Sequence record: PV400809.1
Length of the DNA stretch: 64,000 nucleotides
Direction: 5' to 3' (one strand)
A model generated the notes under the pieces. That model did not search any database, had not been told where the DNA came from, and saw nothing but the letters and a program-made list of their open reading frames with translations. The position numbers were made by a program, and so were the translations under genes. This document shows positions 41,503 to 53,440 of the stretch, one piece after another (within the stretch, counting starts at the first letter, position 1; the number at the start of each line of letters is the position of its first letter).

Positions 41503-42366
41503 TTACCGGAACACATCCAACGAACTGGACACAATCAACCGTGCGGGTTTGGATTGAGCAGGCGTTCGTCTACGGAGATCATCCAGCATTTCCTGTACTC
41601 GAACAAAGCTTTCTGTACCCGCATAACGTTCCGCCACTTCAGGTGAACGCATCTTCTGATCACAGATGAAGAAGAGCTCTTCCATGGTCGTGGTGAACTC
41701 CATTTCCCCACCCTCAGCGGAATAGTCGTCCAGAAGGCTCTCCAAGCCCGCTGTGAGGTGTTTACAGGCACGGAGTATACCCTGCTCTATGACAGCGTCA
41801 TACGTGCTCCAGTAGTCCACCTCGCGCGTTTTATCGCCAAAGTTCTGAGGCTTGGTTACCGTACGGATACTAAACGCCGTATTAATATCCGGATTATCCA
41901 GACTTTCTTGCAGCAGTTGTTTATGGTGTGGGTTCTTCGCCCACGGAATCACTTCAATGTCGTTGTAAACCGGATCATTCGGTCCACCCGTAAAGATCCA
42001 ATGAACTTTACGAATATGACCACAGACATTATCAAAATCAATGGTCCGAAGACGGTTAATCCATTCGAAGAGATCCGTGATCTGCTTGCGAACCACTTCC
42101 CCATTGACCAAGATCTTGTAATACTGGGGTGGATGACCGATTTCACAATACATCTGACCTTCGTTCACCCGACGGTCAAAATCACTGCCTGGACGGGCAC
42201 ACTCACGAATGTAGTCATTCACACGATAGGTAATACCGGAACGGTTAGGGATATTGAACCCCCCCGCATTGATCCGGTAGTACCCCGAACTGTCCATGGG
42301 TTTGAGAATACCCCGTTTACCACTGTTCGCCAGCAGGGTATTCTCAAAGGTTAAAGTATTACTCAT
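41503..42366 (-). CDS. Prohead (head maturation) serine protease, phiKZ gp175-like
   Basis: CEIGHP (His), AFSIRT (Ser) and TYDAV (Asp) motifs. Confidence 0.85.
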   Translation of the reverse strand: MSNTLTFENTLLANSGKRGILKPMDSSGYYRINAGGFNIPNRSGITYRVNDYIRECARPGSDFDRRVNEGQMYCEIGHPPQYYKILVNGEVVRKQITDLFEWINRLRTIDFDNVCGHIRKVHWIFTGGPNDPVYNDIEVIPWAKNPHHKQLLQESLDNPDINTAFSIRTVTKPQNFGDKTREVDYWSTYDAVIEQGILRACKHLTAGLESLLDDYSAEGGEMEFTTTMEELFFICDQKMRSPEVAERYAGTESFVRVQEMLDDLRRRTPAQSKPARLIVSSSLDVFR

Positions 42367-48700: not shown

Positions 48701-50046
48701 TCCTTAGCCCGCTCCTCTAACGCCCGCTTTACACCACTCTCAGGCGTCTTAAACACATTCTTGTTGGTATTGATCTCGGTTTGGACTTTCTCCACCTCCA
48801 GCAGTTCATCATCTACCGGCGATGTCCACTCTTCAAGATTTGAATCAGCACCTCGTTCTCCCGCTGTGTCTTGCTCTTCGTCATGTGCCTCGCCAGGTCC
48901 TTCACTTCGGCTGAAAACATCAAGGATAGAACCAGCAGGACGATCAGCACGGGGAACCGTGCCCGAGCCAGTATGGTCTCGGGTTTCTGGAAGATTGGAT
49001 GTTTCTTCTTCTTCTTCTCGTGACGTTCCCGCAGCCACTTGGTCAACGGTACCTTTCTCTCCGGCAATTGGGATGACATTTTTCGTTTCCTCTTTAATGA
49101 GTACATTCTCAGGAACGCCTCCACGAGAAAGATTCATCAAAGCCAAATAGAAACGTTTAACCGCATTATGGCGGGTCAATGTCTTCAGACTTTCAAACTC
49201 TTTCCGAGCAGAGGGGTAGGTTTTCTCGTCTTTAGGATTTGTCTCATCTAACCAACCCTTCAACAGCCCCAGTTGTACTACAATGACTTTACTTTGAGAC
49301 GTAAAGAGGATATGCAAATCCTTATACGCCTGGTCAGTGAGTTTACCGAACAAACTGAACGAATACTGGCCAAACAGGAACCCCAGTAGGTCCAACAGCC
49401 AATAGCAGTTCTCAGCCTTCGTACTCTCCAGCATATTGCGCATCAGGACAGGATGGCCGTCCTTAAACCCATCAATAAACCGCCCGTAGTCTTTCTCAAG
49501 CTCAACCAGGGACGGTAGGTTCAACGGCAGGTCAATCCGCATATACTGCCGACGCACCCCTTTCTCGGCTTCTGCATTGATGTTCTCAATGAGCAGGTGC
49601 ATCATGTTGTAGTATTTTTCATAATTCACGAAAATACTCGGACGGTAAACGAACCCCTGAGGAATCATCCCGTAGTTCTTAACGACTAGGACGTTCTCTT
49701 TGTTGTACACCGTGCTGATCTCACGCACCCAGCTGTACATGTAGTGACTCGCCCGGTACGCCTTAACCGCCTTAGGGTAGTCATAGGCGACTGTACGCCC
49801 ATGCCCCATCACCGGCTTATACCCGTCCCTTACAAACTCAATAAAGACCTCTTTAGGGAAGTTACTGATAAACGCTTCACTACTACCCGGTCCCTTTTCA
49901 TTAACCGTCTTCGGTACGAAGTGCAGTAAACTCCCCTTAGGAAGGATCACTTCACCAATACCCAGGACTTTAGGGTTTACAACGTCTTGTTTCTTACGCA
50001 GCACAAAGTGCTTAAAGAACTCGGAATACGTAATTGGATTGCTCAT
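45727..50046 (-). CDS. Virion RNA polymerase beta subunit (phiKZ gp178-like)
   Basis: 1439 aa; beta-like motifs GGTGGRS, KDSGKVG, FRKGDVI, EDSIAIS. Confidence 0.85.
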   Translation of the reverse strand: MSNPITYSEFFKHFVLRKKQDVVNPKVLGIGEVILPKGSLLHFVPKTVNEKGPGSSEAFISNFPKEVFIEFVRDGYKPVMGHGRTVAYDYPKAVKAYRASHYMYSWVREISTVYNKENVLVVKNYGMIPQGFVYRPSIFVNYEKYYNMMHLLIENINAEAEKGVRRQYMRIDLPLNLPSLVELEKDYGRFIDGFKDGHPVLMRNMLESTKAENCYWLLDLLGFLFGQYSFSLFGKLTDQAYKDLHILFTSQSKVIVVQLGLLKGWLDETNPKDEKTYPSARKEFESLKTLTRHNAVKRFYLALMNLSRGGVPENVLIKEETKNVIPIAGEKGTVDQVAAGTSREEEEETSNLPETRDHTGSGTVPRADRPAGSILDVFSRSEGPGEAHDEEQDTAGERGADSNLEEWTSPVDDELLEVEKVQTEINTNKNVFKTPESGVKRALEERAKEGTLTVAEHDFFMRKATRYQHIEMENGQTFEEFIQIKPEEVKDLGGEIEGEFLPVLDESMLRSRAKSLKIEYPQKFLHRDIGRMVLGLQNAGFAMNDYRREKVVSVEGSYEVHSIQLHEVNGDQVTVHTRLPTVLKDGTYVIDGVKQHMQLQRREKPFRKISPREVVLSSYYDRKLMVSRSPKMVDNLSTFMVKQISLQSKRKGYTVTKGSTWDRSLKAPRIYSILARQYKYITVDGLVLDFRLKDLLELHPEFKAYTRPDRFLIGVKDGLPLIIDDYGNLYKGEEELGTVEDLLGIDVRKAPLEHVVINISGYSFPLGVVLCFYFGIDELLRVIKATTRSVPVGTRPKLTEDEYAIQFNDEYLIFNRREKLTTLIFGGMPKLNNISNFSRSDLNNNSIWSALMGDPRVRPSQFQEMKNLFDLFIDPITKDLLKEMKLSEDFHYLLIDAAKALETDYSRHEVEIEEQRIVGYERFAGHLYTEFVKSIRQYRNKGKGRKHKLDFNPDAVIIAIGTDRSTNLVEEVNPVHQVKDQEEVTFGGTGGRSEITMVKRARTQLESYKGVISEANKDSGKVGYVTYTTSDPGIADFRGNVDPKNKRTPTGDGSVTMNLMYGGTHDDVKRAVFTSTQASQAVMAKNYEIVTLRTGYENVLAHRTSDLYSKVAAEDGKVTKVENDRLLVEYKDGTTDSYPLGLVIGEASGEYHPHNRTTDLKVGDTFRKGDVIGWDENWFGRDPFCPGQVGVKMGKMCQIVMVEDQDVYEDSIAISKELAMEARTPFIKPSRFAEDVSNNLVMRVKVGDYVEQDTILCDIEEPHLVEGEELPELEADINKLGIKQIRSKHHGKIVHIDVRYNSPLDKMSDSFRSFIVQKDKETKRKGLVEGTGVENNAISTMFNLNRPMLGPGKAFITFYIESLDPSTNADKYVIGNQMKATVGRIMERPLKTASGIVIDVKSSFKGMFNRMVLSLRNKLVANEYGFQITRQAIKLYRGK

Positions 50047-50225
50047 ACCTCAATATCCTCTAAGCCGCTCGTCGCTGCTTTAAACATAAAGAGAATCGGT
50101 TCATTGATCGGATCATACAAAAACCGACCTGTACCACTGATGTAATACTCCCGTTTCCCAAAGAGTTCGTAGGCCTGTTGTTTGCTGTCTTCCGCTACAA
50201 CAGAATGGCTCGACAATTGGTCGCC
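50043..50225 (-). CDS. Exon 2 of virion RNAP beta' (60 aa; not in ORF track)
   Basis: GDQLSSHSVVAEDSKQQAYELFGKREYYISGTGRFLYDPINEPILFMFKAATSGLEDIEV*; follows the intron terminal G; stop overlaps the beta ATG. Confidence 0.88.
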   Translation of the reverse strand, partial: GDQLSSHSVVAEDSKQQAYELFGKREYYISGTGRFLYDPINEPILFMFKAATSGLEDIEV

Positions 50226-50640
50226 CGCATTGGTCAGTCCATGCTAGGACCCGGCACGCTCAGGTGCCTGCCTGTCTATTAAACAGGGCCAGACTATATC
50301 TTGACCGTAGGGAATAGGTTTATTCCCCCTTAGGTCTCCTCCACTTCCACCCCCTTCCTTGGTAGGTGTACAGGGTCATAACTCCCTTAGTCGTTGAACT
50401 TTACGCGTGGGGTCTAACACCCGGTAGCGTCTTAGCGGCTGATTGTCCCTTGTTTACGACCCTTAGCGTTATTGGTTAGCGTAGGTCAGGTCTGCTGTTC
50501 TTTCTACCTTTCGGTCGCATTCACGCTTACTGTTTCCAGTTACGTTGTAGCCAACAGACTTTTGTGAACTCCCAGCAATTCAGAGGAATACGGTCTAGGA
50601 CTTTCGTGCCTAGCCGGACTAAGTGATGGATATAAACTCG

Positions 50641-51912
50641 TTAACGTGTGAGTTTCTTGAAACGATAACGGGAATGGAGCAACTTACCTTCTCGTGCGCA
50701 AACGATAACGGTACGGGGATTGGCTCCGGTGATTCGGGTAACTGCATCAACGCCATACACAATCGACGTCTCCTGGGTTACCGAATCAAACATTTCATAC
50801 ACAGCTGTAGCAGGGTGCATCTTGCGCCGGATGCATTCCAGTTCGTATTCATTCAAATCAGGCCAAGGGGTCTCGTCAGACTCCCGCTTGAATTGAAGGT
50901 CTTTAAAGGCGGATCTCGGGTTGGTGTTACTCAGGGACGTCAGGATGCCTGTTGTCCCTACCTGTGTTGCTCTAGAGGCCTCCGCCAATGAATTATACAC
51001 CGTGATTTCACCGGTGAAGACATTCCGGGCAAGGATCTTCTTACCCACAGGGGGTTTATAGTCCCAGATCTCTTGGAAGTCACGTTTATCTCCCTCCCGA
51101 CGAAGAACGTACCTGTTCTTGTACACCGAGCGAGGACGTTTGAGCACCAGACCAATACACCAAGAATCCACCTCCATGGTTCTGGCAAACTCATTTTGAC
51201 TGACGTACTTAAAGACTTGACCTAATTCCCTGTCAAAAACCTCCAGGGGATTATTGTCCGCTCTCGCTTCTTGATTGTTGCACGCTTTGAAGGAGTTGTC
51301 CTTAGCGGTAACCCAAATCAAGTTAAAGAGCTTGAAGTTCATCTTGTTACCGTCATTATGATCGACCATTAGCTTGGGGTAGCCCTTAGGCGGCTTACCG
51401 AAGGTCTCCGCCAGTAGCCGGTGGACATACTTGCGTTCATCCCCACTGACCACATCCAGTCGAACAAAGGGGTAGAAACTGTCCACAATGACCTTACCAC
51501 CCAGATACGGTGGGTAAAGATTCTTTCTAAGTGTTCGGTATACCACACCGTCTCGGTTGATTGCGTTGAGTTCAAACCCAGGGATGTAGTAGTACCCAGA
51601 GAGTTCAGGGTAAGGGATGCCCTCTTCAGGATAGACCAAGTAAAGGTTATCCGCTGCAAAGTTTTCTGCATCGTCATCCAGAAAACCTACTTTCACCTGT
51701 TCCCATTCAGAGATAGGAAGGTGGAACTTTCCTTCTCCATGGAGGATCATTAATCCCAGTTTGATCTTAACCAGTTCGTCTCCATCGCCCCGTGCGATGA
51801 AGAACGTGTTCCCGTCTGCCATCCGATGGACCGGAACATCCGTCTTATCAGTGACATTGAAAACTGTGTTGGTTGTAGACAACACGTATTTCTTTCCAAA
51901 ACACGTTAACAT
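50641..51912 (-). CDS. Intron-encoded HNH homing endonuclease with C-terminal NUMOD1-like repeats
   Basis: YVHRLLAETF...VDHNDGNKMN...NLIWVTAKDN; three helix-turn-helix-like repeats; AAGGAG RBS. Confidence 0.88.
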   Translation of the reverse strand: MLTCFGKKYVLSTTNTVFNVTDKTDVPVHRMADGNTFFIARGDGDELVKIKLGLMILHGEGKFHLPISEWEQVKVGFLDDDAENFAADNLYLVYPEEGIPYPELSGYYYIPGFELNAINRDGVVYRTLRKNLYPPYLGGKVIVDSFYPFVRLDVVSGDERKYVHRLLAETFGKPPKGYPKLMVDHNDGNKMNFKLFNLIWVTAKDNSFKACNNQEARADNNPLEVFDRELGQVFKYVSQNEFARTMEVDSWCIGLVLKRPRSVYKNRYVLRREGDKRDFQEIWDYKPPVGKKILARNVFTGEITVYNSLAEASRATQVGTTGILTSLSNTNPRSAFKDLQFKRESDETPWPDLNEYELECIRRKMHPATAVYEMFDSVTQETSIVYGVDAVTRITGANPRTVIVCAREGKLLHSRYRFKKLTR

Positions 51913-51915
51913 CTT

Positions 51916-51967
51916 TACAACTCCTTATGGTCGAATGCGAACACTTCCGCATACAATAGGAGTTGTA
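51916..51967 (-). promoter_or_regulatory. RBS-sequestering hairpin with an internal TATG late-promoter motif
   Basis: TACAACTCCT (51958-51967) is the perfect complement of the RBS arm AGGAGTTGTA (51916-51925); TATG at 51950-51953 lies between them. Confidence 0.7.
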
Positions 51968-51997
51968 TAGTGAGTTTATATCATGCATCACTATCTA

Positions 51998-53440
51998 ATC
52001 ATGGTCACTGTCGAGCAAAGCTTCTCTAGAGGGGTCTACGGACATGGCATCGAAGTAATCGGGATGGACTTCACGTTTAGGGAACCGTTTACAGGTTTCC
52101 CGTACACCCCAATCAATCGGATTACGAATGACCCGCTGACTCGCATTGGTGGTGGTACGTAGGTTAACCTTAGCCGGGAAGATAGAGCCAATTCCCGTAA
52201 TGGGATACCGGGTTTGTCCCGTAATCTGTTCTTCGATGACACTGTGGCAACTCAAGTAGAAGAGTTCCATGTAGGTGATAGGTTTCACCCATTTACGGTC
52301 TTTCCCTTGAGGGAGATCGTTGATGTCATGGAGAACACACACATCAGTCCCATCATCATAAATGAGGGCTAAGTATTTCCACTCAATGACAATGGGTTTA
52401 CTCCGTAGGGAGGGATCAGCAAACCCGTTGAAGAGTTTCATTAACCCGGTGGCGGTGGTCCATTTCTCTACCACTTCAGGGGAGACTTCAGCGTATTCGT
52501 ATTCCAGGGTCTTGGTATTCACCAGCTTAGCGGTTTGAGAGCTGGGGGTGAAGATGTTGGAGAGGTAACCGTTGGTTAACGCATTGATGCAGACATAAGG
52601 GAAGTTCAGTAGGGCTTGGTAGAGCCCCATGTCCGCAGAGTTAGGACCTACACCGTCGTCGAAGTCTAAACGTGTCCTGGAGACTTTACGGGCGGTAATG
52701 ACATTCCGGGTGCTGTTGTGAACCCCCCGGGTGGACATACGACGCTGGAGAACACCCCCTTTCCCTTGGAGTAAACCAAAGAGGTAATTATCCAATTCCA
52801 AGAAAGCATTCTGTACCCCCCACCGAACGGTATCGTAAAGGGGGTTCAGGGCATCTTCCTTATTCCCGAGGATCACCCTCACCCGGAACATTAAGGCGCG
52901 GTAGAATTCAGTGATCTCAGGTTCGGTATGGGAACCATCCGGATTGAATTGGATATCCCTGAGACCCGCGGGGATGACCAGGACCTTATCCGTTAACGCT
53001 GTCTTACGGAATTGGTTCGCCAGTTCTACCCGTTGTTTGCGTTTATGGGAGGGGGTCAGGGAGAAGACAGTTTCATCGAAGTGTTTCAGGAAGAAGGCGA
53101 AACCCTTTTCCCCTTCCAGGATGTTCGATTTTATGAAATCCTTCAATTCGGGATCCCATACCGCGTATTCCGATCCTTTCAAAATTGAATGATACAGACT
53201 TTTGATCTGTATAAGGGCTTTTAGGTAAGTGGGATTGAAGATGGGAAGTTTAACGTCGATATACGCTTCCGTGTTATCGCGTTGTTTACTACCCAGTTTA
53301 CCGAAGATGTCAAGGGAGAAGAGACCATCATCATTGAGGTTCTGAGTCATCCCTTCAAACGAGTCCGTAGACGTAATAGGTTTAAAGACACCCGGAACAA
53401 TCGTCCGGGGGTCTAAGAGGGTAATGTTAGTCGGTTTCAT
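51998..53440 (-). CDS. Exon 1 of virion RNA polymerase beta' (phiKZ gp180-like); spliced product 541 aa
   Basis: beta'-like motifs DGLFSLDIFG, VIPAGLRD, GKGG..RR; ends LLDSDHD at an in-frame TAG that is the first intron codon. Confidence 0.9.

Follow-up and report, generated by a model that had tools for sequence, protein, structure and literature searches.

How is a mobile nuclease kept in check when its gene lies inside an intron of an essential gene? The locus that raises this question covers positions 50,641 to 51,967 of a 64,000-nucleotide stretch of sequence record PV400809.1 (the whole stretch is called the window throughout), where the gene of a predicted HNH homing endonuclease, encoded within a group I intron of a virion RNA polymerase gene, is preceded by a hairpin that pairs its ribosome-binding site (RBS). 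We conclude that this hairpin is probably a translational repressor of the intron-encoded nuclease. A sequence-only reading of the locus had gone further and proposed that the long beta' precursor keeps the nuclease untranslated, while a late transcript made by the phage's non-virion RNA polymerase (nvRNAP) starts at a TATG motif between the hairpin arms and frees the RBS. Over the 3.5 kb around the hairpin the window matches Pseudomonas phage vB_PaeM_GXNNE2 at every position and phage EL at 97.6% identity. Both phages are assigned to the genus Elvirus of the family Chimalliviridae, and the DNA is that of an EL-like Pseudomonas jumbo phage. The minus strand carries every gene relevant to the hairpin and the intron.

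A hairpin over the ribosome-binding site of the nuclease gene

The elements around the start of the nuclease gene are as follows.

50641..51912, minus strand: HNH homing endonuclease gene, 423 amino acids (Pfam PF13392, E-value 5e-11, residues 161-207)
51916..51967, minus strand: RBS-sequestering hairpin, with the 5' arm at 51967..51958, a 32-nt loop at 51957..51926 and the 3' arm at 51925..51916
51921..51925, minus strand: Shine-Dalgarno sequence AGGAG, located in the 3' arm and 8 nt before the HNH start codon AUG (51912..51910)
51935..51952, minus strand: inner 7-bp hairpin AUGCGGA/UUCGCAU within the loop (apical loop 51945..51942)
51950..51953, minus strand: TATG motif in the loop; a start at its G (51950) would give a 38-nt leader without the 5' arm

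On the minus strand, UACAACUCCU (51967-51958) is the perfect complement of AGGAGUUGUA (51925-51916), and in the RNA the 5' arm TACAACTCCT and the 3' arm AGGAGTTGTA form 10 perfect pairs. The perfect pairing claimed in the sequence-only reading was recovered and its TATG does lie between the arms (51953..51950), although the loop measures 32 nt and not the 33 nt given there. Folding of a 101-nt RNA yielded -25 kcal/mol (z-score -2.46), a value equalled by two out of 200 shuffled sequences. With a minimum stem of 10 bp and a loop of no more than 40 nt, the window contains 24 perfect inverted repeats as compared to 2.65 in shuffled sequences; most of the 24 are intergenic terminators. A terminator reading of the hairpin was rejected, as no U-run follows on its 3' side, whereas the terminators of the window consist of GC-rich stems followed by CTTTATT.

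The accessibility of translation starts was expressed as the opening energy, i.e. the energy needed to unpair positions -17 to +4, for all 53 annotated genes of the window. With 15.7 kcal/mol, the HNH start ranked first among the 53 genes (median 6.4, standard deviation 3.0), which bears out the sequestration of the RBS that had been proposed from the letters alone, and its z-score was 2.8 against shuffled upstream sequence (only the upstream part being shuffled). Without the 5' arm, the opening energy dropped from 13-14 to about 6 kcal/mol, that is, to the median of the window. The lock over the RBS is in itself well supported, and it would be expected to repress translation of the nuclease.

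Two further sequences in the window touch on this subject. The second-highest opening energy (14.5 kcal/mol) belongs to the start at 42366 on the minus strand, where a 13-bp inverted repeat without mismatches (loop of 22 nt; 42301-42348) lies just inside the upstream gene and may represent another translational control. The GGAGUU hexamer of the RBS arm (51924-51919) has two further copies on the minus strand in the ribozyme, one at about 50573 in the P4/P5 region and one at about 50385 just after P7, and the 5' arm could in principle pair with these instead.

The hairpin recurs in unrelated leader sequences

HNH genes at 22-35% identity were found in introns of the same polymerase gene in the phages VB_ZK_P1, FishSpeaker, PDCC-1/TSL-2019, phiKZ (gp179), Goslar and C-ZP2022, and in introns of other polymerase or DNA polymerase genes in Totoro, Haymo, phiKp_32, PhiPA3 (gp210) and HPP-Temi; three further intron HNH genes come from metagenomic jumbo phages. 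A search for related loci with a four-member HNH alignment brought up known phages only. Rfam places a ribozyme core 3' of every relative HNH gene examined. Twelve other intron-borne HNH leaders could not be aligned with one another, and each of them holds a hairpin whose 3' arm covers the RBS. The opening z-scores ranged from 1.5 to 5.8 in eleven relatives, the hairpin of locus L028 being weak and left unscored. In the first nine relatives all z-scores were positive (1.5 to 5.8); individual values were 4.9 for Haymo, 3.9 for phiKp_32, 3.3 for PhiPA3 gp210, whose nuclease has been tested, and 2.4 and 2.8 for the metagenomic loci L158 and L177. The conservation in introns of related phages that the sequence-only reading had brought up therefore takes the form of equivalent hairpins of different sequence in 12 other HNH leaders. 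Because unrelated leader sequences still form RBS-covering hairpins, the lock is conserved in structure but not in sequence, and this conservation constitutes the chief support for a translational lock.

Within the EL clade, the arms were identical in all seven sequences. The 85-nt leader contains a single variable site (51944, G to A, in the apical loop of the inner hairpin), while the exons, the nuclease gene and the ribozyme vary at 4.1-4.7%. In one metagenomic jumbo phage (L029/L030, 1100-1477), an HNH gene runs antisense to its group I intron (93 bits) and its AAGGAG RBS is unpaired.

The nuclease gene lies in a group I intron of the virion polymerase beta'-N gene

The intron and its exons were delimited as follows.

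51998..53440, minus strand: exon 1 of the virion RNA polymerase beta'-N gene, ending ..DSDHD (57% identity to residues 1-481 of Joad gp231)
50226..51997, minus strand: complete group I intron of 1772 nt, with the 5' splice site after U 51998 and G 50226 as the final base
50043..50225, minus strand: exon 2 (GDQLSSHSVV...DIEV; 71% identity to Joad residues 482-537, to which the 60 codons at 50225..50046 align)

The sole Rfam group I core (RF00028; P3 to P9) in the whole window lies at 50644..50272, directly 3' of the HNH gene. It scores 46.7 bits (E-value 2e-9), slightly below the Rfam gathering score of 50, and the cores at related loci score 49-93 bits. The splice junction was placed with the help of the beta'-N-like protein of Erwinia phage Joad, whose 539 amino acids are uninterrupted at the intron site: joining the exons at residues 481|482 restores the frame without a gap in the alignment, and the size of the intron gap matches in the EL locus L108. 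The open reading frame (ORF) of exon 1 comprises 481 amino acids (PHROG 2986, profile positions 5-486 of 539) and is closed by an in-frame UAG (51997..51995) that makes up intron bases 1-3. As in Joad, exon 2 and the following polymerase gene overlap in the sequence ATGA, so that the stop of the former runs into the start codon of the latter (50046). The intron interrupts the catalytic Asp motif of beta'-N (DSDHD|GDQL). The HNH gene is thus intron-borne within the virion polymerase beta'-N gene, and the group I intron is predicted to be spliced out of a long beta' precursor such as the sequence-only reading assumed.

The encoded protein matches PHROG 59 (E-value 3e-46) and, weakly, I-HmuI (PDB 1U3E, E-value 0.002). 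Residues H164, H185, N197 and N206 are unchanged across six HNH homologues, and the N-terminus is conserved in homologues as well. Across the EL clade, 34 synonymous changes in the gene stand beside 23 non-synonymous ones, from which we infer that it is under selection. The product is predicted to be an I-HmuI-like HNH homing endonuclease; among these relatives, only PhiPA3 gp210 has been tested for cutting or nicking (PMC11620839). A terminator-like hairpin followed by AGUUUUCAAU (51866-51885, minus strand) lies 27 nt into the HNH coding sequence and is only a weak match to the consensus.

Several observations concern the distribution of such introns. In phage EL, the next polymerase gene is interrupted after ..GTHDD by a group I intron without an ORF, approximately 415 nt long (Rfam 40.5 bits, L001:2387-2843), at the site of the PhiPA3 gp210 intron. 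The phage of the window reads through this site at about 46846/46845 (minus strand), and intron presence therefore varies within Elvirus. The homologous intron-nuclease units use three insertion points within 12 nt of one Asp motif, each after a GAU codon: the first Asp (phiKZ, Goslar, TSL-2019), the third Asp (EL-like phages) and the position after GD (VB_ZK_P1, FishSpeaker). PDCC-1 (L010; 2326 and about 4047) combines the 5' half of a TSL-2019-type intron with a VB_ZK_P1-like 3' end; its 5' exon ends with C instead of U, and the predicted spliced message lacks the four codons xDGD of the catalytic motif. Among 80 beta'-N loci from IMG/VR (L108-L187), 66 are uninterrupted at the Asp motif, 11 are interrupted and three have no exon 2 match. 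Four of the 11 interrupted loci (L157, L181, L182, L184) show gaps of 354-470 nt without an HNH gene, and an Rfam intron core was found in three of these gaps and not in L182.

An extended P1 helix and a three-way junction at the start codon

The following pairings connect the two ends of the nuclease gene.

51972..52004, minus strand: 5' strand of P1 and its extension, consisting of exon GAU, then intron UA, AGUGAUG and GAUAUAAACUC
50614..50639, minus strand: 3' strand of the extended P1, starting 2 nt past the HNH stop codon, in which G 50619 is the partner of the splice-site U 51998
51893..51910, minus strand: 5' strand of the start-stop helix, comprising the G of AUG and the following codons
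50640..50662, minus strand: 3' strand of the start-stop helix, comprising the last HNH codons and the stop codon
51968..51993, minus strand: local hairpin AUAGUGA/UCACUAU, a competitor of the P1 extension that uses the same bases

The P1 partner stretch 52005..51971 consists of eight exon bases and the first 27 intron bases, with the paired part at 52004..51972. The duplex of P1 and its extension is predicted at -25.5 kcal/mol (z-score -4.0), with none of 300 shuffles being as good, and its helix comprises 5+7+11 bp including the splice-site pair U 51998-G 50619. An initial placement of P1 by Rfam directly after the nuclease gene was rejected for its non-standard pairs, and the long-range P1 was used instead. 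Equivalent P1 pairings with very different sequences were found in the Raoultella phage VB_ZK_P1 (L008) and the Photobacterium/Vibrio phages PDCC-1 (L010) and TSL-2019 (L011). The ORF-less intron of EL gp186/187 has the same CAGUCC-type guide before P2, and its P1-type helix is closed by a 22-nt loop. Since the P1 strands flank the nuclease gene and the ORF-less EL intron closes the same type of helix, the nuclease cassette is best described as an insertion into the P1 loop.

The start-stop helix was predicted at -16.0 kcal/mol (z-score -3.3). Its core is a perfect 10-bp pairing of GUUAACGUGU with ACACGUUAAC, which contains one mismatch in EL, phiRU and two HHBS phages. When P1 with its extension, the RBS hairpin and the start-stop helix were folded jointly, they formed a three-way junction at the start codon (-62.3 kcal/mol).

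Probable repression of the nuclease and possible protection of splicing

According to this arrangement, the nuclease gene would sit in the terminal loop of a greatly extended P1, and in the precursor or the excised intron the RBS hairpin, the start-stop helix and the P1 extension would converge at the start of the nuclease gene. The folded ribozyme may thereby keep ribosomes off, and a ribosome reaching the stop codon would unwind P1. As three helices converge at the start site, translation and ribozyme folding look mutually exclusive. The lock would hold nuclease output low and, if it is indeed linked to splicing, would protect the splicing of the essential gene.

Several observations weigh against a translational lock of this kind. 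Chimalliviridae separate transcription from translation (PMC12908238), so that shielding splicing from ribosomes may matter less than in T4; this separation raises the question why ribosomes must be kept off the intron at all. Long-read ONT-cappable-seq of phiKZ revealed no splicing at gp179 (PMC10914365). Covariation in the hairpin was sought among the seven EL-clade sequences and none was found, the identical arms making this comparison uninformative. In addition, some relatives show modest z-scores (1.5-1.9), and the HNH genes KTN4_075, KTN4_076 and that of OMKO1 have no hairpin at their annotated starts, their context or start being doubtful. Despite these points, repression of the nuclease by the hairpin is the reading we favor.

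Possible release of the lock and other explanations

If the hairpin represses translation, a further point is whether and how the lock is released. Late promoters of phiKZ are marked only by TATG, whose G is the first transcribed base and which is necessary but not sufficient (PMC4666361); the motif is read by a pocket in subunit GP123 (PMC12809450). The sequence-only reading had stated both this rule and the I-TevI precedent of T4 correctly (PMC2988022, PMC4666361). It is conceivable, if far from assured, that the nvRNAP starts at the G of the loop TATG (51950) late in infection and thus bypasses the lock with an arm-less, translatable transcript. TATG is the essential start motif of phiKZ late promoters (PMC4666361, PMC12809450), and a 5' end at 51950 cuts the opening energy to 6.1 kcal/mol.

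The motif was counted in a fixed interval from -60 to -10 in 14 independent leaders of chimallivirus HNH genes. This test did not include HPP-Temi, a phage outside the chimalliviruses, nor PA7 (L018), OMKO1 (L021), KTN4_076 and L160, whose HNH starts are uncertain. TATG was present in eight of the 14 leaders, compared to 4.2 expected from mononucleotide shuffling (P 0.03) and 2.0 from the background of the loci (P 2e-4), while the control leaders of the beta'-N gene contained it in four out of 30 cases. In six leaders its G lies at -24 to -26, a clustering that was reached by none of 5000 shuffles and that puts TATG at the top among all 4-mers; in the TATG-bearing leaders, the G always lies at or beyond the end of the 5' arm. 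Against these counts stands that the G of the window lies at -38 and thus outside the cluster, that the shuffle test gives P 0.07-0.13 once the leader of the window is omitted, and that dinucleotide shuffles of the hairpin segments yield P 0.3-0.5, which is not significant. The hairpins of phiKZ gp179 and PhiPA3 gp210 contain TATAG but no TATG.

Within the window, TATG alone is weak evidence for a promoter. By chance the motif is found in approximately 7.3% of 32-nt and 9.6% of 42-nt windows on the minus strand. It occurs 2.3 times per kb and strand in intergenic regions as compared to 1.8-2.6 times overall, and there is no enrichment upstream of genes, for which reason TATG was rejected as a general upstream signal in this phage. 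None of the other genes of the window has a TATG 20-45 nt upstream, and most upstream regions have zero copies. Apart from the four bases themselves, no promoter signal is recognizable at 51950-51953, a search for a host-type promoter between 51700 and 52200 yielded none, and a k-mer search of the intergenic regions brought up only terminator tails. The motif is under-represented in the window as a whole: base composition predicts about 250 copies per strand, but the minus strand has 167 and the plus strand 115.

The polymerase and the RNA structure do not favor the bypass either. The EL homologue of GP123 retains only part of the binding pocket: four of 16 pocket residues are identical (K158, H331, S334, Q466) and three are conservative, while F151, N186, N398, Y399 and S402 are changed, several of which contact bases; these assignments stem from an alignment of only 19% identity. 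The start-stop helix would, moreover, persist in an arm-less transcript. In phiKZ the virion polymerase class is made from middle genes (PMC4666361), and a T4-style contrast between early and late expression is therefore not evident for this host gene. Of the late start near 51950 put forward by the sequence-only reading, what holds is the drop in opening energy to about 6 kcal/mol upon loss of the arm, while the motif is not enriched upstream of genes in this phage and is missing from the phiKZ and PhiPA3 counterparts of the leader. Likewise, its idea of T4 logic on an nvRNAP promoter stands with regard to the T4-type lock over the RBS, and the promoter part is plausible only.

Extended to the family, the bypass becomes the tentative proposal, which we would not bet on, that the intron HNH genes of nucleus-forming jumbo phages share a module composed of an RBS hairpin and a TATG start for the sigma-less phage polymerase at the 5' edge of the loop. 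In that case the nuclease would be made only from a short, late, arm-less transcript, the T4 intron logic would have been rebuilt independently on another transcription machine, and the TATG rule would extend past the close relatives of phiKZ. The fixed-distance TATG in several lineages offers a cheap test of the four-base promoter rule of phiKZ across the family.

Alternatively, the hairpin could be a constitutive attenuator with no dedicated release, whose rare spontaneous opening yields enough nuclease for homing. Locks are present in leaders with and without TATG, and nicking HNH enzymes work in small amounts, PhiPA3 gp210 being active despite a sequestered RBS and no TATG (PMC11620839). 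We consider this explanation possible yet doubtful, as it does not account for the fixed-distance TATG in six leaders and as useful leakage seems unlikely from a three-helix junction as stable as -62 kcal/mol.

It is improbable that the hairpin has no translational role and is only a structural or stability element, an RNase III-type processing site or a chance repeat. The outer stem, a 3-bp segment and the inner stem do stack to about 20 bp, a length accepted by double-strand nucleases, and about 2.65 such repeats per window are expected by chance. However, the 3' arm covers the RBS specifically in every relative despite the differing sequences, ORF-less introns (same site; EL gp186/187) lack a hairpin of this kind, their P1 being capped by a short loop, and the missing U-run speaks against a terminator.

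Least credible is an opening of the lock by translation of a short ORF from the loop AUG (within UAUG) or by a ribosome ending exon 1 at the UAG: an ORF of 8-9 codons from the loop AUG does end on or beside the HNH AUG in VB_ZK_P1 (L008; UGAUG), Goslar (L013; UGAAAUG) and phiKp_32 (L025; AUGA), and in Goslar, Totoro and C-ZP2022 no more than about 8 nt separate the stop of exon 1 from the 5' arm, but the loop AUG of the window lacks a ribosome site of its own and starts a frame of 34 codons, +1 relative to the nuclease gene, which ends only beyond the HNH start, the corresponding frames of the TATG-bearing leaders of Totoro, Haymo, L158 and L177 stop after 1-6 codons, and unmasking at the exon 1 UAG was rejected, since this stop lies 27 nt from the 5' arm, out of the reach of a terminating ribosome, and its distance varies across relatives.

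Comparison with known systems

Placement of a nuclease gene within P1 has a counterpart outside phages. [quoted passage not shown]

The translational repression that we propose for the window has its closest parallel in the td intron of phage T4 with I-TevI (and also in I-TevII and I-TevIII), where an essential gene likewise contains a group I intron with a nuclease gene and where the RBS hairpin is accompanied by an internal late promoter (PMC2988022). As in the window, a stable hairpin pairs the consensus RBS about 8 nt before the AUG of I-TevI, and the end of the nuclease gene joins the ribozyme structure, so that translation and splicing conflict (PMC2988022). Loss of the I-TevI hairpin impairs td splicing (PMC2988022). 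The two systems differ in that the nuclease of the window is of the HNH and that of T4 of the GIY-YIG type, and in that the gene of the window lies in the P1 loop, in a nucleus-forming jumbo phage with polymerases of its own, where the promoter is only putative. A further difference is that no operator-like copy of the homing site was found in the leader of the window: the best match to the intron-less junction was 12 out of 20 positions, which 204 of 500 shuffles reached, and an operator for autorepression of the I-TevI type was rejected as this match is not above chance.

The free-standing mobE gene of Aeromonas phage Aeh1 shares with the window an HNH nuclease, a hairpin-sequestered RBS and a long transcript of the host gene (PMC2988022, citing Gibb and Edgell). 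Unlike the window, mobE lies outside any ribozyme and has no P1 or start-stop junction. PhiPA3 gp210 and phiKZ gp179/gp180 are I-HmuI-like HNH genes in group I introns at the catalytic Asp of virion polymerases (PMC11620839), and as in the window the gene lies 5' of the ribozyme core and a hairpin covers the RBS. They differ from the window in that gp210 interrupts a beta-like gene and not beta'-N, in that gp179 is inserted after the first and not the third Asp, and in that neither hairpin contains TATG.

Nucleus-forming phages that infect the same cell were recently shown to use mobile introns in their polymerase genes as weapons against each other (PMC11620839). In the literature searched, we found neither a description of RBS hairpins in jumbo-phage introns nor an account of how these intron nucleases are controlled. 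A conserved RBS lock at the tip of the splice-site helix would provide a concrete and testable answer to the control of the nuclease. Taken against these known systems, the hairpin of the window represents a further lock of the T4 type, to which a polymerase bypass may plausibly, though only tentatively, be added.

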